Shown: in pieces, positions 1,429 to 55,482 of the stretch
Layout: every line of letters starts with the position of its first letter
Numbering within the stretch: the first letter of the stretch is position 1
NCBI GenBank assembly: GCA_964234715.1
Contig: OZ174275.1
Length of the DNA stretch: 64,000 bases
Source: Podarcis melisellensis
Taxonomy: Eukaryota
Direction: 5' to 3' (one strand)
Translations under genes and position numbers: made by a program
The notes under the pieces: model-generated
What the model was told of the DNA's origin: nothing
What the model saw: the letters and a program-made list of their open reading frames with translations, nothing else
Databases searched by the model: none

Positions 1429-4400
1429 AAACACACCATACCTTGAAAGCACTCTTATAACACCTGGGGAATCCTGGGAACTGTGGTTTGTTAAGAGTGC
1501 TGGGAATTGTACATCTGTGAGTTCAGTGCCTTTAAGAAACTACATTTCCCAGGGTTTTTTGGGGGAAGCCATGAGCGCTTTAAATGTATGAAGTGGTTGT
1601 GACCTAAGGCAGTTCCTTATCTTCCATGAACCCCACAGTGGCTTAACAGCAAGAGTAGGATGCCAACACAAAGGGCCACCAACGTATTCTAGTTTTCAAG
1701 GTACAGCATCCCACAGGCATCATGGTGAGTTCTGACACCTCTTTTCTAGAAAAATAGCACTGCTTAACAGTGTCTATAAATGGCTTCCCGAAGAAGATAT
1801 ATATATGTCTTGATAGAGTGTGCTGGAAACCAGCCCAAATTGCACCCCCTATGTGAGCCCCACCCCTTGGGCACTGCTACTTAGCCATATATATGTGTGT
1901 GTGTGTGTGTGTGGTTTTTTTTTTTTTAAAAAATACATAGTTACCACAGCAACAGAGGGTGAAAAGCTTAATGTTCTGGAACATGGTGATTAAAGATTGT
2001 TACAGAAACAGTCGCTCCATTATGTTATCATGGCAGACACATTGAATCATAGAGCTGGAGAGGGACTATCTAGAATCATGGGATCATAGAGTTGGAAGAG
2101 ATCTCGGAGGTCATCCCGTCCAAGCCCCATGTTCAATGCAGGATCGGCAATGCAGGATGTAGCTACTGCATCCCTGATGGATGGCCTTCCAGCCTCTGCT
2201 TAAATATCTGCAATGTGTTCCACTGAAAACCTGGAGGGCCTCTGTACAGGGTGGGAGCAACTCTGTGGAACTCCAAGGAGATTCATCAGGCTAGAGAAGC
2301 AATAAAGAGCTCTTCTCTTTCTGTATTCCATAATAAGGCACTTAAGGGTACTTAAGTAATGGACCTTATCAAAACATTTTTTGCTGCTGCTCTTCTTCCG
2401 ACCTTATTTGCCAGTTTTTATTTCGCTGAAGCTTTGCAGAGCAATCCTATGGTTGGGGGGAGGGGGAAACGTAGCTTGTTATAAGGGTGCTAGGAACTGT
2501 AGCTGTGTGAGGGATAAACTACCATTCCCAGGATTCTTTGGGGGAAGTCAAGTGCTTTAAATGTATGCATTTCCATGAAAACTAGAATTGTTAGCAGAGA
2601 GGCTGTTGCCACAAAGAGCATAACTGAAAATAAAATTGTGAGGAAATCTACTTTTGCAAGACCTCAAGACTCCTCCATCTTCCAAATGGCCTACTGCAAA
2701 CTGGAATAGCAAATTGTTATCCTACCCGCAGCAATGGTTCGCTGAAACTCACCTCACACATCGAGAGCTAAGATGTTGAGAGAATTCACTCAGTTCCCAA
2801 TGGCAGCCTACCCCTTTGTGTTCTTTACCGAAAGGAGAAGACAAATATGATGTTATAACATGCCCACAGAGTTCTGCATCTTGGATGCCCCCAGGCAAAG
2901 GCCCAGTATACCTTCTAGCTAATTTGTAAGCAACTAATTCCTCCTTTAATTGTATTTCCCTTATGCCCAAGTTTGTTACTTTTCATCTTGGATGTCATCT
3001 ACAAAAAGGCTCTTGCTGCTGATCACTGGTTCCTATGTTGTCTCTTGTGATTAATTAGATTTAATCCTTTTGCTACACAGCAGAAGTAAGGAGAGGCAGA
3101 GTCTCAGGCTACTACAGCAGCTAAGGAAAGAGGCTATCTTTGGTAAATGTATGTTTTCTGAAGATTCTTTGTCCCATAATTTTCTTCCACCTTTGGAGGA
3201 AGTCAGGTGCTCTGAATGTGTGGGGCATACACAACCTAAGCACATTTTTTAAAGCCAGCTTCATAGAATCGTGGAGCTGAAGATGGATCTTCTAGGTCAT
3301 CTAATGCAACTCTCTACTGCAGGAAACCCAGGGTCAGAGCATTCCCATGTATGGCTGCCCAGCATCTCTGCTTGCAGTTCACCAACCCTACATAATTGGT
3401 TGCATTGCTGAACTGCTCAAATGTTTATCTTAATGTTCTGGTGAAATCTACCTCCTATAACTTGAGCTTGTTCAGTCTAGCCCTGTTCTCTGCCATATAT
3501 TTGCAAAGGGTGATCTCCCCATAGGACTAGTTTTCTGTACCCCTAACCATCTTCTCAACCTATCACAGGGGTGTCTGCATCAGGGGCAAAGACCCTGTTG
3601 CCATCCAAAAGTTACTGGACTCCAACAAGTGTGGCAACAGTACTGACAGATATCACAGCGGTTTCTTTCAAAAACCCCACTGAAAAACATGATTTCTCCA
3701 TTTTCCATGCCTAGACCAGGCATCTGTTGCCCCTGTGGGTGGCAAAGGGGCCAGCTCTGTCATTAGACAGAGTGATATGGCCACCTCAGGTGGCAAATGC
3801 TAACGGGCAGTGGCAGAAACCCTGGCTGTTTCCCCTGTGTAGGCCGTCCATCCTGCCCTGTGCCCCTTAAACAGAAGCACTGTGCACAAAATTTGGCCCT
3901 GGATTGCTCTGGGTCAAATATGGTCCACTCAGACTGATCTAAGGCTGTCTAAAGTGGGAGGTGTACTCACTGTGAGGAGAGGGGGGAGGAGATGCACAGG
4001 CACCCTATGTGTGTGTCTCCTTCTTCCCACCCCATGACTGTTTACCAGCAGGGCTGTTCAGGGCCTAGATCCAACTCAGTCCCAGATTGTATTGGGGCCA
4101 CTCCAAAACACAAAATTAGGCCCTGAATCAGATGGGGTGGGGTGGGGATTGTGCACAGCCTCGGGTGCTGCCTCAGGCACCATGAAGGACCCTATCCCAA
4201 TTGCTGTGTTGGAGTGGGGTTCAGTTGCCAGTCCAGTTGACCTGTGGATGGAATAAGGAGAGGAACAAACCCATCTTCGTCATCACCTCTACCAGCAAAA
4301 AGTCATAGCCAGCCTTGGTCTGCGAGTCCTGTTTTCACACCGAAATACTTCACTGCTCATAGTCTTTCAATACCCGGATTTAAGGGATCAGCTAAACATA

Positions 4401-4919
4401 TTTACCAAGCATGGATTAAACAAGTCTGAGTGTAATCATTTTATCTTTATCTAACGTGTTACAGGATTGTAAATAAGCCCTGGGATGCTAATTTCAATGT
4501 ATACAAACCTAAGGGTACAAAAAAAAAAATGACCCCAAACCTCCCCTGCAGCATCAACAAATTAATTTACATAAAGAGAAACAGAGGACTAAACTAAATT
4601 TATTAACTTTAAATGAGTTCAGAAAGCTGCATGTCTTGGCAAGGAGGAGCTGGGTAGGAGTAGCGGAATCAAAACCCTTTTCAAGATCTGAACTCAGTTC
4701 CACTTTGAAGATTGTGTCCTCAACCAACCTCTTCTCTTATTTTAGTCACTGAAAGCTATTTACTGTCAGGCTCGAGGCAACTTAGGTGTGGGGGAAACTT
4801 CTTGCCCAGCTGGAACATGTCCTTGAACTGCGATAAAGCCTCTTGCTTGCATTGATGACGAGAAATGTACATATGGAAGGAGTGTGGCTGTAGAAACCTC
4901 TGACTTTTGTGTGGCTAGG

Positions 4920-5046
4920 CAGAGCTTTCCAAACTTTTCAAGGTTAAACTAACCCTTTCTAGACCCAGGAAGAGTGTTCGTGTGACACACCTACACACTT
5001 CAGCCGACGCACCAACGTGTCATGACACACAGTTTGGAAAGCTCTG
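4920..5046. mobile_element. hAT-type MITE
   Basis: 16-bp perfect TIR CAGAGCTTTCCAAACT; ggctag on both flanks. Confidence 0.7.
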
Positions 5047-5892
5047 GGCTAGAATATAGCCCACTGTACAAAGCTAAGAGTCACATCCAATGCCCTACCC
5101 ATTTTTGCCCCAAGGCCCATCCACCAATGGCATGTGGCCCTCAAAAGGTTCTCCATGAGAGAATACGGCCCTCAGGCTGAGAAACATTGATAAAAGTTCC
5201 CCATCCCTGCCTTAGACAATTATGTTCTCAGGCCCTGGTATCTGTTATATGAGGAGATGACTGGCCCATCTTAAAAGGTTATTGTAAAGGTATTTGTGAA
5301 GCACTTGGAAGTTTATTATTATTATTATTATTAAGATTTATATACTGCCCTTTATCCCAAGATCTCAAGTTGAAGTGCACTAAATGAATGGGGCAATAAA
5401 TGCAGGAGGAATGATGTCCCTCCTCATCCTTCCCTCCAACACTTGTCAGGAGCTTATCATGCCTGAAAATGCTGTCGCAGGGATGTGTGGACAGCCTTGG
5501 CCCTGCTTCCCAGGTAGGCTGTTGGTTCAAGTAGCAGTTGTAAGGTATGAGTTCCAGGAACATTGCTTAGTCTCCTCATGTATCCTTGGATGTATCTGGG
5601 AACTGTGTGCTGATGGTTGGATTCTATGAGATAGGAGAGTTCTCACATGCGCCCAATAATGTCATCAGAGTGGCATTCCTGGGGGGCTACTGATGCAGAA
5701 AACTTTCCTGGGGGCTGGTGAAGTTTTTTGGTACTTCCCTTCCATCATCATTTGCAGATGTCTACACAAGATGGTTCCTAAGAGCAGTAATGGATGGTGA
5801 GGAGGGGTGTTGTATCACTCACGTGATCTCTCGCCAGTCAAACCACTGCTGCTTACCAGGAAATAGAGCAGTAAGGCAGCAGGGAGGCTGAT

Positions 5893-6150
5893 GAAGAAGA
5901 AGAAGAGGAAGAGTTTGGATTTGATATCCCGCCTTTCACTCCCTTTAAGGAGTCTCAAAGCGACTAACATTCTCCTTTCCCTTCCTCCCCCACAATAAAC
6001 ACTCTGTGAGGTGAGTGGGGGCTGAGAGACTTCAAAGAAGTGTGACTGGCCCAAGGTCACCCAGCAGCTGCATATGGAGGAGCGGAGACGTGAACCCGGT
6101 TCCCCAGATTACGAGACTACTGCTCTTAACCACTACACCACACTGGCTCT
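5893..6150 (-). mobile_element. tRNA-derived SINE with (CTT)n tail (Squam3-like)
   Basis: Head agagccagtgtggtgtagtggttaagag on minus; near-identical copies at 11112-11307 and 48627-48875. Confidence 0.8.
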
Positions 6151-8307
6151 CAATGCAGCGCAAATGTCCCAGCAGGAGCACCAGACTGCCTCCACTGTTG
6201 TGTTTGCGCCGCGCCAATCTCGCTGCCGCCTTACCCCATCCTATCTCCTACCTAAAGAGCAGCAGCAAAACATACAGCTATAGGTCAGGGGAGTGGCAGT
6301 GCCCCACTGCTGCCTCAGAGGCAGCAAAAGATTTTTCTGCCTGGGATGGATGACAAAATGCGCCCCCACAATTCTGCATCCAGAAGTTGATTAGACTAGC
6401 ACCTGGATGTTGGAGGTCCTCCATTGCAACAGGTAGCATCAGGCCCATTTAAGGGTCAAAAGGTAGGCTTATCTAGCACACACAGTGCTGTCCCCCCAAC
6501 ACCTCACCACTGCTCCTCACCTGCTTCCCTGAGGCAGCTGCTTCACTCTGCCTAACAATAGGGCTGTCTGTGCTTCCTGAGATGTTCCAGACAGAATTCA
6601 TCTGTCTGAAGACTGTGTTCCAGCCAGAATATTTCCTCTGATGATGAGGTTTTCAGGTCTTGAGTGAAGATAACCCCTCTGCAGCAGACACTGCCTTTGG
6701 CTTTCACCCTTTTCTGCTCTACCTGTGTTTCCCAAGATCAAGGCAAATGTGTGCATTTGTGACACACTGCAAAAATATGTACAAATTGCTGTCCCCCCCA
6801 AAAAAAAAAATTCTGTCATTATGAGTAGGTGGGGTAGGTGCTTTTCAACAGAGCTCTGTTTCTGTTTGTCAGCTGGAAAGGATAAAATACAACACTGTGT
6901 TTCCATTTGCCTCATAATAGGATCTGAGTGCTTGTTATGTAAATTAGATTTCTGTTAAAGTTCAGTTTTAAAGAAAGACTAAGTGCCTATTTAATTGAGG
7001 CCACTGCTGTAAATGCTTCTGTAAATTTCCATTCAGTCAATGAGACAGGTCATTCTAGCATGGAAGAAGTAAAATGAGGGAGGGAAGGGAAGGAATGAAA
7101 TATTGAAAGGCCAATTTTGAAAACAGGCCTGTATTCTGTGCTCAAACATGCAATATTTAAGAGGCATTATTTTAATTTTTTTACTTTTAAAAAAAGTATT
7201 TCTTTTTAATACACAAATGTTGCTAACAGAACTGCGTAGAGCTATGCTAATGACTCAAACGGATGCTATTTTGTTCTGCAAATATTTTACGAGTTCTTTA
7301 CGCAAGTACGAATAAAGGCATAAGAGGAACTGGCTTCCCAGTGGATGTAGATGTTCGCTCTGCAAGACTGCGCAGAGCATGCAGAATTATCTATACCCTC
7401 CTGGCACAGAGATATGTCTAATTACACTGTTTTCACTACCTAATCAAATGGAGTTCCCAGGAGTGGAATATTCTAAGTCTTTACAAGAGGCAGACAACTC
7501 ACTCAAAACTGAACACTGGAATCCAGGCACTCAAGAAGCTCCTGTACTTGATGGTGAAAGGAGATCACAGCCCTTGGATAGCTGTGCTGTATTCTGGAAC
7601 TCATTGTTTCTAAGGGCAACCAGGTGCAAAAGGGGAGAGCAGAACTGTTGTACATTTAAAAAACAGCAACCCTCATTTCCCAAATGTAGTTCTTGCTGGG
7701 GTTTTATTTGAAAAAAGTGTATCTTCCCTTTTCGTTACCGTGGCAATACTTAGGGCAGCTGAAACCTATTTAAAATATATTTAAAATTATCCAACGAAAA
7801 CAAGCTGACAGGAAATTGTAATCTATGTACTTCCCAGAAAGTTGACTAGGCTGACACCTAGGGCGGATTTTTCTTACATTGGCAAAATGTCCAGGGAAAC
7901 CCAGACGTACGGCAAGTAGGGCATTTTTTAAAAAAATAAATGCTTTGAAAATCCGAAAGTCCCCAAACTTTCTTTGGGGGGGGGGAGAGATGTTCCCCCC
8001 AAAAGCTCAACAACCATGTCCAGATTTTCACTTTTGGGAATATGGTAACCTTATTTTAGGTTAAGTCAGGCAACCTTCCTTGAGATGTTAGTTGGGGCCA
8101 GGTCGGGGAGATAAACAATTATGAATTTCAGAGCCTCCAAGGGGTTAGCGTGAAAAGCGCAAATTGAATAGGCTTCCTTCTTCAGAGGATTAAAAAGGTT
8201 AAGGTTTATACCAGTCGGTTGGAATAAGATGGAGATGGGGCAGGGCATGGTGCTTGCTGTCCATTTGAGTGCAAGGCTACAGCTATGGAAGAAACAGGGA
8301 CCTTTTG

Positions 8308-9653
8308 GCTTCCTGTTTCTGCCTGTGCCCTCAAGACAGGGAGAAAAACAGATGGAGATAAACAAAGAATGATTGATCGGGGGGGGGGGGGCTCATTCTT
8401 TGAATCCCTCTCTGGGTGGGAGAGGAACGGGCTCTCATCTGCAGATTGCCCTGAGGTCTGGCACTCACTTCCCTGGAGGCAATGAGACTACAAGGATTTA
8501 AAGGTTGGAATTGAGATAAAGTTTCATTCGGTGCCAGAGACGGTGGAGGGGGGGGGAGCCTGTGATTGTTTTTCAAAGTTTTTCTTTTACATTTCTGATT
8601 CGTCAACCCTCCTCGGAATGCAAGGTTAAAACATAATATAAAAAGTGAAGGTGGAAGAAACTGGATTAATAACATGAAATTTAACATCAAACTGGAACTG
8701 TGCGTGAGAGATGAATGGAATGGAGGGGGGGGGGAGTTTCACCCTTTGAAAGGACTATGTTAGAATATAGAACGAAACCACCCCCACTCTCCGTTATTTT
8801 CAAAGGAATGCGAAAGAGACTGAAACAATTTGGAATGTAATCTAACTGGAAAGATAACTGACTATAATTTTTTCAGCTGAAAGGAGTCTGCCAACTGCAA
8901 GGTCAGAGGTTTTCTTATTAATCATTGGCAGTTTGGAATCAGACCGCTCTTCCTAGGTTGGAGGGGGCAGTGGCGTAGCGTGGGGGGTGCAGGGGGGGGG
9001 GCCGGCCGCACTGGGCGCAACATCTGGGGGTTAGGGTCAGGGGGTGCAAATCCACGGGTTAGGGATTTACTTGCCTTGCCCCGGGTGCTGACAACCCACG
9101 CTACGCCACTGGGGGGGGGGGATGGCAAGGATTTGTTGAAACAGAGGGGTCTCTAGCAAACTCTTGAATCACAGGAAAAAGTGATGCAGAGGCTTTTGGA
9201 AAACTATGAGACAACCGCTTCCTCTGAATCATGATGGGGAATATTAACAGTTGGAAGAATGAAGGACACAACACCATATATGGTTGGGACAACATCCTGG
9301 GGAGGAATTACCACACACAGGAAAGAACAATAATTACAGACTAGCTCATTTGAAACGTTATAAATTACTTAATATATCGACACAAATTGAAACCATAAGA
9401 TTGTAGCTATTATATAGGGGATTACTATCTTGAAGGGAATGTAATTGAAATTATTAAGATTTTGGAACGCAGAAAATAAAAATAAAAAACAAAGAGGAAC
9501 CCATCAAAACTATCATGTGAGGAAGTCACTTAAACTGTATAATTCGGTATATAAATAATTGGTTTTAATAACTGGATAAAATTGGCATTGTTACAGCGAG
9601 GCTGTTATTGGAACAATATTGGAAAATCAATAAAAAAATATATTTATCACAAA
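8308..9653 (+). mobile_element. Short internally deleted L1-like retroposon
   Basis: 19-bp TSD aagaa(a/g)cagggaccttttg (8289-8307 / 9654-9672). A-rich 3' end with AATAAA. L1 ORF2 C-terminal-like peptide VTARLLLEQYWK near 9590-9625. Confidence 0.7.
8968..9111. mobile_element. hAT-type MITE (144 bp)
   Basis: 17-bp TIR CAGTGGCGTAGCGTGGG; 8-bp TSD 7/8 (ggaggggg / gggggggg); second copy at 22363-22524. Confidence 0.85.
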
Positions 9654-10660
9654 AAGAAGCAGGGACCTTTTGAGATGCCAAAGCTATGAGCCCTTCCCGA
9701 TCTTAGATCAGGTTGCATATATGTGTAAATAAACCATAGATCCTAAAGACACCAGCATCTCCACTGTGCCTCATTTGTCTGAAAGGAAGCATAGACCCTG
9801 GTTTAAGGCATGCCTGCAACCCAGGAATCTCGCATCACTCGAAGAGATTGGTAAGTACACAGTTTGAACTTGTTAGCTGCATTGTTAAACTCAAGGCCGA
9901 CCAGCAAGCCCGTGAAACGTCTGCCATTAAGGTTTATTACTTCATCAATATTGTGGACTACGGTATGTAATACCTATTGCTCCCATGAGTCAGCCGGTCT
10001 ATTCCAGAGGAACATGCTGTTTGCTTCCAGGTGTCAGATCAGAGACAAGGGGCCTGTGGATTCTGGCATAAAGAGGGAAGGCCTGTTCTATCCCAGGACT
10101 GTAGATTCTGAACAGCATGTTGCGCAAACTGTATTGTTTAGCCCAGCAAGTGAGATTTCCTTTCCCTTGGCTAATGAGGAATTCGTGCTGGCAGGCTGCA
10201 TTTCAGACACAGTGATCACGAGGCAGGACCAAACATCAAAAAAGGAGTGGCACATCAGAGGAACTGCAAATTGACTTTTGGAGGCCTATCTCTGTTTAAA
10301 AACAAGAATTGGGAGGAAGCACACTGGATGTGCCAACTTTTGTGCTTTGATTTAAATACTTTTTTTTTAAAGCAAATTCTCCCAGTCCTCGTTTGCCAGC
10401 CTGACTTTGTCCTCTTATTTATTACAGAATTAAGTTATTACACCCTGCCGTTCTGCCATTCCTGGCTCCCAAGGCTGATTACAATCAGAGTTCTGTAAAA
10501 CGGTATGTCAAGATCAAATCAAACCACAATAATCGATAAAAGAAAAGTGAGTAAAAGTAATCAAAAGTTATAAGTGCTGCCAACACAAATTCAAAATGTT
10601 GAGAAAAATACGTAAAGTTTTAAACTAGACATCTAAAAGCCAGTACTGTGGGTCGACCAA

Positions 10661-17816: not shown

Positions 17817-18074
17817 TGCCCCTATTTTCATCGGAGAAATGTTGGAGGGTGTGGGATGGCCAAATCCCCTGGACTGCTGGGTACCAAGGTGTTGACCCTG
17901 CAGGAGAAAGTGGTTGTGCTGGGCGTGGGAGACCAAGCTGCACCTAAAAGCCCAGGCAAACGTCCCTGTTTTCATCTGAGGAATATTGGAGGATATGGTA
18001 TATATCTAAATAGAAACCTTTGACTTTTGCCTGACTGGAATGCACCCTACTGTACAGAGGTAAGAGCCTCACCC

Positions 18075-19124
18075 AGGCGAGGGAGAAAGTTGTTGTTGTT
18101 GAACCTCAAGTAATACAAGTGGAGAGAGTCCCAGCCTTACAGAGGCAATTTGATGAATATAAGTTCTTGCCTTCTATGACTGAATTCAGAGAAAGTCAGA
18201 TTTTGAGGATTGGAGCCCTGCTTGGACTGGAGAAGGAAAGTTGGATAGATCTCCTCATGCAGGGATGTACTGACCTTTGGGACCTGGACTTGGGTCAGGA
18301 GGAGATTGGAGTTGTGGGGACCTTCCGTTTTGGAGGGATTTTGAAACACGTCCTGAAATATTTTTGGGACTCTAGTTTTAACTACGGAGATTTGGCTGAC
18401 CTGTCGAGAAGGAATAAAAACATTGCTAGGTTGGAGCTTCCCTGAGATCTACTCCTTGGCATCAAAGGAAGGAAATTAAGAACAAGATCAGCAGAAGACA
18501 ATGTAAAGTGCATGTATAAACATGAAGAAGATCTGCAGAAGGGACTTGGGAAAGAGTTAAGAGCCTCGGACAGAAGATCACCAGGTTGATGGACTATATG
18601 CAATTGACGCAAATGACTGGCAGAATCCGAGACCAGGGAGAAGAGATGGTGGAAGAAGATTGGAAAAAGTTTAAAGACTATCTATGGAAATAATGTAAAA
18701 TTAATGAGTGTTAGAAAAATGTTGGAATGAAATTATATGGCTTTAGTAGAAATGTTATAAGGAATTAAGTATAAATAAGTATTATAGTATTAATGGAAAA
18801 TAAGGTTAAAATATGTTATGATAAATATATGACAGAAAATAGAGAAAGATGGAAAGGACTTGCTGAAATAATTAATAGAAAGGGAATACAAAAAGGGAGG
18901 TGAGAGGAGGTCGATGAAACAAGGGAATGAAAGAGAGGGTATTGAAATGGTATGATGTGTGTTTTTGAATTGTTTTTGCTCTGTTGTGTTTTGTTTAATG
19001 TGTTAATGTTGTGTTGTGTATTGTTTATATATTGTACTGTATTGTTTTTTCTTTCTTTTTCTTTTTTCTTTTTTCTCTTCTTTGTAAGGTTTAAAAGTAA
19101 TAAATATTATTTTTTTTAAAAAAA
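18075..19124 (+). mobile_element. Non-autonomous L1 derivative (ORF1-like segment + ORF2 C-terminus + 3'UTR)
   Basis: Perfect 19-bp TSD agaggtaagagcctcaccc (18056-18074 / 19125-19143). AATAAA and poly(A). 18577-18693 encodes ITRLMDYMQLTQMTGRIRDQGEEMVEEDWKKFKDYLWK*. Confidence 0.8.
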
Positions 19125-20125
19125 AGAGGTAAGAGCCTCACCCTTTGCTCCACCCACTTTAGCCTCTGGCCCCGCCCACCACTGACACGTGGCACCAGAT
19201 TGGTTGCCTATGAAGGAGTGCAGTTCTTGGGCTAAGAAAGCTTCCCTAGTGCTGCTCTACAGGTTCACAAATGTTAAAAGAGACAGGTGTGGCGCATGGG
19301 CAGGTATGGCCACCTGTCAGGGATGCTTTAGTTGAGATTCCTGCATTGCAGGGGGTTGGACTAGATGACCCTTGGGGTCCCTTCCAGCTCTACAATTCTA
19401 TGATTACGGGCTTTTGACCTTTCAGTTCCTGTTGTAACCAAAACACAGTCTTTTGAAAGTGTTTTGATTGGAAAAACAACAACTGCAATGAACGGTGGTT
19501 CTTGATTAATTGGTTATAATCCGTGACTGGTGTTGATGCTTGTTGCTGTAGCTTCTCCCTCCTTGCTGTCCGGCATCCTCTAATACCGCAAAACAAGCTG
19601 TGAAAATTAAAGCTCTGAGGGTTACAGAAGGTTGAGTGATGGATGGGCTGGGGAGCTGGGAGGCAGGGACATGGAGAGACCTCAATTACAGACTGGATGC
19701 ATTGCACAGAAAAGTGTGGATTACTGTGAACAGCTGGTGCAGATTCAATAATCAACTGCTCAGAGAGAAAAGCCTATTTCCCCCCCTCATCCCATAGCAT
19801 TAGAACACAGGATACCAGAGCTGCCAAATTTACAATTGAAATCTGCCCACGCAGAATTGCAAAGTCCCCTTGACTCTCATTTAAATGCTCCTGGCTCATT
19901 ATAAATCTGCAGCTTTTGATGCATGCTGTGTAGTTTTACTCCACATCGCCTCTCCCAAAGCACCCTGAAGTGTTCAGCAGGCTTCAGTCTTTGGTTGTGA
20001 ACACACCATACGGTTAAAGCACGCTGAAGGCACACCCTCCTACCCCCCCAAAAAAAATGAATTACGGGAACTGCATTTTGTTAAGGGTTCTGGGAGCTGT
20101 AAGGGGCAAACTACATTTCCTAGTA

Positions 20126-43481: not shown

Positions 43482-43626
43482 TTAGAATCATAGAATCGCA
43501 GAGTCGAAGGGACCACGAGCCTCATCCAGTCCAACCCATGGCAATTCGGGAATCTTTTTCCCAATATGGGGCTTGAACCCACGACCCTGAGATTTAGAGT
43601 CTCGTGCTGTACTGACTGAGCTGCCC
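43482..43626 (-). mobile_element. tRNA-Lys-like SINE with CR1 tail (Squam2-like)
   Basis: gctcagtcagtacagcacgagactctaaatctcagggtcgtgggttcaagcccc head, then CR1 tail ending attctatgattct. Confidence 0.75.

Positions 43627-55134: not shown

Positions 55135-55170
<36 letters not shown>
55135..55170. repeat. (TA)n microsatellite, left flank of the palindrome
   Basis: Seen directly. Confidence 0.95.
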
Positions 55171-55173
<3 letters not shown>

Positions 55174-55218
55174 GGTTTTGGTGTCCTCGGGTGTCTTCCC
55201 GTGTAAAAGTTGGGGTGT

Positions 55219-55263
55219 CTAGGCGACGTTTCGACGAGGTCTCACTCGTCATCTTCAGGCTGG
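55219..55263 (-). ncRNA. Mirror copy of the hammerhead motif, same strand as CALM1
   Basis: Exact reverse complement of the plus-strand motif; core runs 55258 down to 55225. Confidence 0.75.
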
Positions 55264-55315
55264 TGCTTTCGGCTTCTTGTTACTGCTCTGTTCCAGTAAC
55301 AAGAAGCCGAAAGCA

Positions 55316-55360
55316 CCAGCCTGAAGATGACGAGTGAGACCTCGTCGAAACGTCGCCTAG
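55316..55360 (+). ncRNA. Minimal type I hammerhead ribozyme motif
   Basis: CTGAAGA (55321-55327), extra T, stem II GACGAG/CTCGTC with loop TGAGAC, GAAA (55347-55350), then CGTC (palindromic ACGT helix III, GUC cleavage triplet ending 55354). Stem I is short (2 clean bp). Confidence 0.75.
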
Positions 55361-55436
55361 ACACCCCAACTTTTACACGGGAAGACACCCGAGGACACCA
55401 AAACCTGCATTCCTGTACCCGTGAAAATCTACGAAA

Positions 55437-55438
<2 letters not shown>

Positions 55439-55482
<44 letters not shown>
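55439..55482. repeat. (TA)n microsatellite, right flank of the palindrome
   Basis: Seen directly. Confidence 0.95.

Follow-up and report, generated by a model that had tools for sequence, protein, structure and literature searches.

A 270-bp palindrome of Penelope-like element ends with a hammerhead motif on each strand in the lizard Podarcis melisellensis

Known Penelope-like insertions and the architecture of the locus

Insertions of Penelope-like elements (PLEs) are described as combining pseudo-LTRs (pLTRs), an inverted 5′-truncated copy, a one-sided tail of 30-40 bp and a bias for microsatellites (Arkhipova 2006; Craig et al. 2021, PMC8557442); two features, the inverted repeats and the confinement of the tail to one end, still count as unexplained in the published work. 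The minimal hammerhead ribozymes (min-HHRs) of these elements are characterized by a G10.1-C11.1 pair, a long helix II, a palindromic 15.2-16.2 segment without loop III and a very short helix I, and pairs of them on opposite strands, 100-700 bp apart, have already been published (Cervera and De la Pena 2014, PMC4209133). In vitro, activity in this class is low or protein-assisted. In the only biochemical study of a PLE, that of PAc, the hammerhead cut site lies 26 nt after the start codon and internal reverse transcription begins at two start sites, of which that at nt 111-118 is the major; between them lies the sequence that makes up the tail (nt ~85-119, roughly 34 nt) (PMC11167929). The PAc protein prefers AT-rich DNA, and both target strands are cleaved and extended. 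The ribozyme cleaves only with the element protein, insertion in vitro works without the ribozyme, and no reads were seen in vivo that end at the position of the hammerhead cut (PMC11167929). Dual opposite-strand min-hammerheads, inverted truncated copies, one-sided tails, AT-rich or microsatellite targets and an ORF start within the hammerhead are, in sum, all on record (PMC4209133, PMC8557442, PMC11167929). What the locus described here adds is a compact natural example that agrees with the PAc in vitro data: with its 270 bp it shows the target, the junction at the centre and the two 3′ ends down to the single nucleotide.

The locus lies in a 64-kb window, that is, the whole stretch of P. 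melisellensis DNA that was analysed (64,000 nt). Two arms of 117 nt each, at positions 55169-55285 and 55294-55410, are 100% complementary; they are separated by 8 nt, CTCTGTTC (55286-55293), and followed on the right by a 28-nt tail (55411-55438) that has no counterpart on the left. Each arm contains eight CpGs; for the window as a whole the CpG observed/expected ratio is 0.27, a value typical of a methylated vertebrate genome. A (TA)n microsatellite surrounds the whole insertion, extending 34 nt on the left (55135-55168) and 44 nt on the right (55439-55482); the same type of target flanks the twin insertions of Podarcis and Vipera presented below. A check of the sequence reproduced every element of the geometry given in the original prediction (exact 117-nt arms, 8-nt spacer, eight CpGs per arm, a 28-nt tail on the right only), and the proposal that an inverted pLTR pair with a short tail is the signature of a PLE matches published descriptions (PMC8557442, PMC11167929).

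The inverted 5′-truncated pair, the single-end tail and the (TA)n target are those of PLE insertions at large. The locus departs from them in being an extreme miniature, both copies measuring about 120-155 nt with no full-length unit within or beside them, and its 28-nt tail is slightly under the quoted 30-40 bp. As short, non-coding, hammerhead-bearing, PLE-related DNA it also resembles the metazoan non-LTR retrozymes (PMC7229834; bioRxiv 10.64898/2026.07.22.740005). Retrozymes, however, are arranged as head-to-tail tandems, which allow dimeric hammerheads and circular RNAs, whereas the copies here lie head to head, with one sense and one antisense motif.

Coding identity of the arms and the hammerhead motif

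The A9-U-G10.1 positions of the hammerhead provide an ATG at 55327, from which the sole open frame runs through the end of the tail. The first 37 codons of this ORF (MTSETSSKRR...TRENLRK) occupy 55327-55437 on the plus strand, and the first 28 codons are repeated in the left copy on the minus strand (55252-55169). In an exhaustive HMMER search the 37-residue peptide was 68% identical to residues 1-37 of a protein, P0002, with the same start methionine; tblastn matched residues 1-28 of P0002 to the left copy. The ORF for P0002 lies on a public contig of 2,989 bp (L001), where a 773-codon ORF follows it directly. This second ORF matches Pfam RVT_1 at 2e-17 and has a weak GIY-YIG match, below the curated cut-off (19.2 vs 22.6 bits). 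Its product is 45% identical to an 836-aa PLE protein of Anolis carolinensis (E = 0, 626 residues aligned); the alignment spans the reverse transcriptase (RT) and the GVYxIPC...YIGxT endonuclease motif, and the pairwise match in the endonuclease region is clear. P0002 can be aligned with the N-terminal part of this Anolis protein (E 1e-26). Among named proteins, those nearest to the L001 protein belong to Podarcis muralis (85%) and to Vipera latastei (83%). At the DNA level the arm and L001 share about 85% identity overall; the hammerhead core (~55309-55357, about 49 nt) is identical in the two, and the flanks have diverged. The PLE ORF of L001, a transcript-like contig, is split into overlapping frames (119-688 and 669-2987, overlapping at 669-688), which points to a frameshift in this copy or to an error of sequencing. 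Another protein, P0001 (830 aa), matched in a representative search and was rejected as repetitive and spurious.

Given its homology to the 5′ junction of elements that encode an RT and a GIY-YIG endonuclease, the arm is, as judged from the sequence, the pLTR/ORF-start junction of a squamate Poseidon-type PLE. The expectation that copies would be found beside RT and GIY-YIG ORFs was confirmed by the ORFs of P0002 and L001, by the Anolis alignment and by the copies at a Podarcis muralis locus (L002, OZ076968.1). The insertion itself is a PLE fragment and not an autonomous element, because it retains merely 37 and 28 codons, with no RT and endonuclease ORF, and because no other PLE DNA or protein similarity was found in the 64-kb window outside the palindrome. 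Of the original prediction of a non-coding PLE insertion, the PLE part thus stands and the notion of a separate non-coding family does not: this is the extreme 3′-terminal piece of an autonomous element, carrying 28 or 37 ORF codons.

The hammerhead motif, CUGAAGA-U-GACGAG-UGAGAC-CUCGUC-GAAA-CGUC, occupies 55321-55354 on the plus strand and is mirrored at 55258-55225 on the minus strand. With its first helix the minimal type I motif extends over 55319-55356 (+). Stem I consists of GC at 55319-20 (5′ strand) and GC at 55355-56 (3′ strand); the core CUGAAGA (55321-27) is followed by an extra U (55328); stem II joins 55329-34 with 55341-46 around a loop at 55335-40; GAAA (55347-50) then precedes CGU-C17 (55351-54), with cleavage predicted after C55354. 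By the symmetry of the palindrome, the mirror motif covers 55223-55260 on the minus strand, with its core at 55258-55252 and a predicted cut after the C at 55225. A min-hammerhead descriptor (core boxes, an optional extra base, a perfect stem II, 4 bp or longer and starting with G, GAAA, a palindromic 15.2/16.2, U and H) gave two matches in the 64-kb window, both in the palindrome, and none in 150 first-order Markov resamples. The claim of a hammerhead motif on each strand is upheld by the two descriptor matches, with none elsewhere in the window, and stem I does have just two clean base pairs, as had been noted. Searches for type I hammerheads were nonetheless divided, as the descriptor singled out the two palindrome sites and the Rfam hammerhead covariance models returned no match to the palindrome or a single arm at E values up to 10. 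An experimentally cleaving PAc hammerhead, present in an Anolis PAc-like copy (L004), was also without a match; because this active control was missed too, the Rfam models do not cover the PLE min-hammerhead class, and the miss was rejected as evidence against the motif. An exact-family motif pattern scan of viral contigs gave no matches.

Comparison of five squamate copies bears on the fold. The core CUGAAGA (55321-27) and the GAAA-CGU-C segment (55347-54) are invariant in all five, and the extra U after A9 and the G10.1-C11.1 pair are likewise present in every one. Over the whole hammerhead fold 93% of the cells are paired and 7 of 9 pairs have changed on both sides; no shuffle out of 500 scored as high, and slid registers fell to 29-53%. 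Helix II accounts for 6 bp, with 100% of cells paired and changes on both sides in 4 of its 6 pairs. Helix I comprises 2 bp here and 2-3 bp in the relatives: its inner two pairs covary between Anolis and the remaining copies, and the third is unpaired in 3 of the 5. The palindromic ACGU of helix III is present and invariant in the five copies, invariant pairs being uninformative on pairing. When two hammerhead segments were folded together with RNAcofold, the dimeric 4-bp helix III did not form, a result that counts neither for nor against dimer cleavage. The covariation across the five copies supports the predicted hammerhead fold. Together with the presence of all those traits listed in PMC4209133 that are not part of the descriptor, it also agrees with the assignment to the PLE-type minimal hammerheads. 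The short helix I, of 2 bp as in D. virilis, is a further likeness to metazoan PLE min-HHRs (PMC4209133); the two motifs differ from the published pairs in lying 63 nt apart (core to core) inside a perfect palindrome.

The resemblance to Poseidon_Ac/PAc is close. Both share the arrangement CUGAnGA-U-[6-bp stem II]-GAAACGUC, and in both A9-U-G10.1 is the ORF start codon. The cut falls 26 nt after the ATG in PAc and 25 nt after it here, stem I has 2-3 bp, the tail interval is ~85-119 in PAc and ~87-115 here (aligned), the target is AT-rich, and a conserved helix surrounds the AC-rich start region. The family is nevertheless a different one, the RT/endonuclease protein of L001 being 45% identical to that of Anolis and the 5′ region barely alignable outside the core. 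In addition, the L004 locus is a direct tandem, whereas the locus studied here consists of inverted 117-nt stubs without RT or endonuclease.

Whether the motif would act as a ribozyme at this position is another matter. The predicted folding energy is -251 kcal/mol for the whole hairpin and about -12 kcal/mol for the local hammerhead hairpins, and because a hairpin of this stability would sequester the motif, self-cleavage at the P. melisellensis locus is predicted to be unlikely. The two tandem sense hammerheads required for a dimer are absent. Since each transcript strand would hold one sense motif locked by its perfect complement, dimer cleavage at the locus also appears improbable from the modelled folds. 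The hammerhead motifs in the insertion are best regarded as passengers; the insertion, having neither RT nor endonuclease, is incapable of moving, and if transcribed it would fold as a 117-bp hairpin.

End points, centre junction and other twin insertions

With the copies oriented from the hammerhead onward, the left copy ends in ...AAACCTGCAT|(TA)n and the right copy, 28 nt longer, in ...CTACGAAAGC|(TA)n. Numbered from the ORF ATG, the left copy (55169-55285, minus strand) comprises element nt -33 to +84 and finishes at the untailed 3′ end point; it is the 100% reverse complement of the right arm and 99.1% identical to the L002 element. The same element interval, nt -33 to +84, forms the right copy (55294-55410, plus strand), as indicated by the complementarity of the arms and by homology to L001 and L002. 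The tail (55411-55438, plus strand) continues from nt +85 to +112 and thus fills the distance between two alternative 3′ end points. Upon alignment to the L004 copy (ATG at 4001), the end points correspond to approximately PAc nt +87 (untailed) and +115 (tailed), with the tail itself aligning to PAc nt ~88-115. Each arm represents the terminal part of the transcription unit of the element and consists of 33-41 nt of pLTR, a minimal hammerhead over the start codon and 84 nt (left) or 112 nt (right) of ORF; the two outer ends of the insertion are the family's two fixed, RT-start-derived 3′ end points.

A comparable reading is possible at the centre of the palindrome. Both uninterrupted copies at L002 (2/2) read ...GATCCTG CTCTGTTC CAGTAAC..., with the spacer contiguous with the arm; the spacer (55286-55293, plus strand) is therefore element sequence in sense orientation (nt -41 to -34) and not filler. 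It represents a 5′ extension of the right copy, which starts at element nt -41, the left copy starting at nt -33. At the junction the left copy ends ...TTACTG and the sense sequence before the spacer reads ...TCCTG, giving an overlap of 3 nt (CTG).

Analysis with RNAalifold identified a conserved 6-bp helix that would join the arm to the tail (55376-55423, plus strand), CACGGG at 55376-81 pairing with CCCGUG at 55418-23. The 3′ strand of this helix lies in the tail, and the AC-rich loop that it encloses contains the +84 end point. In five sequences 30 of 30 cells are paired and half of the pairs (3/6) have changed on both sides; shuffles scored as high in 3 cases out of 500, and slid registers were all at or below 50% paired. 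The compensatory changes fall between the lacertid, viper and Anolis families (alignment columns 63-68 with 108-113). In these five sequences the covariation lends modest support to the putative arm-tail helix, which is likely to be part of an RNA structure recognised at the initiation of reverse transcription.

Three other twin insertions were compared with that of P. melisellensis. At L002, two copies are 99.3% and 99.2% identical to positions 55286-55438, spacer included, and form a near-perfect palindrome of 4.65 kb (2394-7048) with arms of ~2.3 kb, a 5-nt centre and a tail at one end. The outer ends fall, to the nucleotide, at the same two points as in the P. melisellensis insertion, and both abut (TA)n. 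The sense copy passes through the centre and reaches L001 nt 849, the antisense copy reaching nt 862, with an overlap of about 2 nt; the orientation of this centre was deduced by comparison with a related element (~86-96%). A public gene model for an 'uncharacterized protein', LOC144326219 (735 aa, L002 4001-14158, about 10 kb), covers the right half of the L002 palindrome and is probably an annotation artefact, at least partly built on a dead transposon.

The remaining two occur in Vipera latastei (L003, CM044371.1, 560-6520) as separate twin PLE insertions in (TA)n, with arms of 321 nt and 1,477 nt, which show a homologous end pattern in their own PLE family. Both are located inside the span of a gene that encodes a product with thiamin pyrophosphokinase domains. 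In the pair with 1,477-nt arms the copies abut directly and are truncated at L001 nt 515 and 1641, an asymmetry of 1,126 nt that may stem from unequal cDNA lengths or from a later deletion at the palindrome centre. All four twin insertions, that of P. melisellensis included, have (TA)n on both sides and exactly one tailed end (4/4; p = 0.06 under independence). It is the longer copy that bears the tail in P. melisellensis, and the shorter one at L002.

Origin of the palindrome and its genomic context

We consider it highly probable that the palindrome is a twin, severely 5′-truncated Poseidon-type PLE insertion into a (TA)n microsatellite. As we picture it, the GIY-YIG endonuclease of the element would have cut both strands of the AT-rich target, and each exposed 3′-OH would have primed internal reverse transcription on element RNA, one at +84 and the other at +112. 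Both cDNAs would have stopped some 120-155 nt on. Their same-sense 3′ ends could then have been bridged through the 3-nt CTG/CAG microhomology, overlaps across loci being 2-3 nt, and completion of each cDNA with the other as template would yield perfectly palindromic arms around an asymmetric centre of 8 nt, with the tail on one side only. That the tail goes with the longer copy here and with the shorter one at L002 fits two independently primed cDNAs. On a sample of four loci, we give this two-primer, bridging mechanism about even odds. It holds no explanation for the near-equal stops of the two cDNAs, which are ~11-13 nt apart here and at L002 and are more suggestive of an intramolecular fold-back, or of coupled synthesis along a single template. 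The small distances (~11 nt here, ~13 nt in L002) might even hint, speculatively, at the two RTs of a dimer tailgating on one RNA.

The locus might also record in vivo what was suggested by the experiments with PAc in vitro, namely that both target strands prime, with one start site each, and that the cDNAs are bridged by 2-3 nt of microhomology; we advance this stronger reading tentatively and lean somewhat against it. If true, one start site per strand would explain the one-sided tails of PLEs, and microhomology bridging of cDNA 3′ ends would explain their inverted repeats. The P. melisellensis locus constrains models for PLE inverted repeats.

Perfect arms, tiny centres (8 nt here, 5 nt in L002) and overlaps of 2-3 nt are also what hairpin self-priming predicts. 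A single cDNA whose 3′ end folded back, through a 3-bp CAG/CTG stem with an 8-nt loop, could have copied itself, the hairpin being later unfolded and filled in. Such a snap-back would account for the near-equal arm lengths and would suffice for the P. melisellensis locus taken alone, where the tailed copy is the longer and hence the primary one. At L002, however, the longer, centre-bearing copy is untailed, and a self-copy cannot reach 28 nt past the start of its own template; a stop exactly at +84 would have to be added ad hoc. The strong asymmetry in Vipera, with copies cut at L001 nt 515 and 1641 that abut directly, also stands against it. We regard a snap-back origin as unlikely and, given the tail on the shorter copy at L002, have down-weighted it as the only mechanism. 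Far less probable still, indeed scarcely credible, is an assembly artefact in the form of a fold-back chimera or a mis-joined read. Tandem and inverted PLE structures are reported to cause assembly problems (PMC8557442), but this palindrome has limits that coincide to the nucleotide with the two biological 3′ end points of the family, has a built-in asymmetry in its tail and in a spacer made of element sequence, and is flanked by different unique sequences on each side. Moreover, the same architecture recurs in independent Podarcis and Vipera assemblies, and a single read from any modern platform would easily contain its 270 bp. The palindrome is read from the assembly, with the other loci as analogy.

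The palindrome might instead be a small functional element, either a retrozyme-like non-autonomous unit or a miRNA/siRNA hairpin gene exapted near the 3′ end of calmodulin. Rfam miRNA-precursor models score the hairpin with E values down to 6e-14, the calmodulin stop codon is ~1.5 kb upstream of the insertion when read along the strand of that gene, and PLE-derived retrozymes are known in vertebrates (bioRxiv 10.64898/2026.07.22.740005). The matching miRNA families (MIR6288, mir-3914 and others) nevertheless reach at best 66.6 bits, against a gathering threshold of 74, with the rest far lower, and matches to such models are generic to any perfect hairpin; the Rfam miRNA, SRP and sok matches on the palindrome were accordingly set aside as sub-threshold hairpin matches. 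Retrozyme units are direct tandem repeats, whereas this is an inverted pair with no further copy in the 64-kb window. The arms are 99% identical to the junction of the autonomous element, the same ends recur in palindromes ranging in size from 0.27 to 4.65 kb, which implies that each was made anew at insertion, and no sign of conservation or expression was seen. A functional unit of either kind is accordingly very doubtful, and the twin PLE insertion remains the reading that we prefer.

Several features indicate that this twin insertion is young, among them the absence of any difference between the arms, the survival of CpGs in a genome otherwise poor in them and the match, at 99% identity, with a copy at another locus. 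Arm identity alone would not date it, as gene conversion between the arms could maintain their identity. The 99%-identical copy at another lizard locus and the intact CpGs support recent activity, in line with the suggestion of a very recent insertion from a PLE family that is likely active.

The neighbouring calmodulin exons are on the minus strand, between 56,950 and 63,600, where the EF-hand peptides DKDGDG, FLTMMA and DIDGDG are encoded at ~63,558, ~59,562 and ~57,463, and the terminal MMTAK-stop at ~56,970-56,953. The palindrome follows the stop codon by ~1.5 kb in the direction of transcription, and AATAAA signals occur on the calmodulin (minus) strand both before and after it. A perfect 117-bp hairpin near the 3′ end of calmodulin may possibly form double-stranded RNA or make the DNA fragile. 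For annotation purposes the insertion is an ordinary dead fragment of a retrotransposon class that is often mishandled by gene predictors and repeat maskers. Over the whole 64-kb window, Rfam at gathering thresholds gave a tRNA-like match only, outside the palindrome (43566-43622, minus strand; 33.1 bits, model positions 9-63 of 71), which may be a fragment of a tRNA-derived SINE rather than a gene. GC skew was high in the 2-kb bins 8,001-10,000 and 18,001-20,000 (+0.18 and +0.19, respectively) and about 0 elsewhere in the window.
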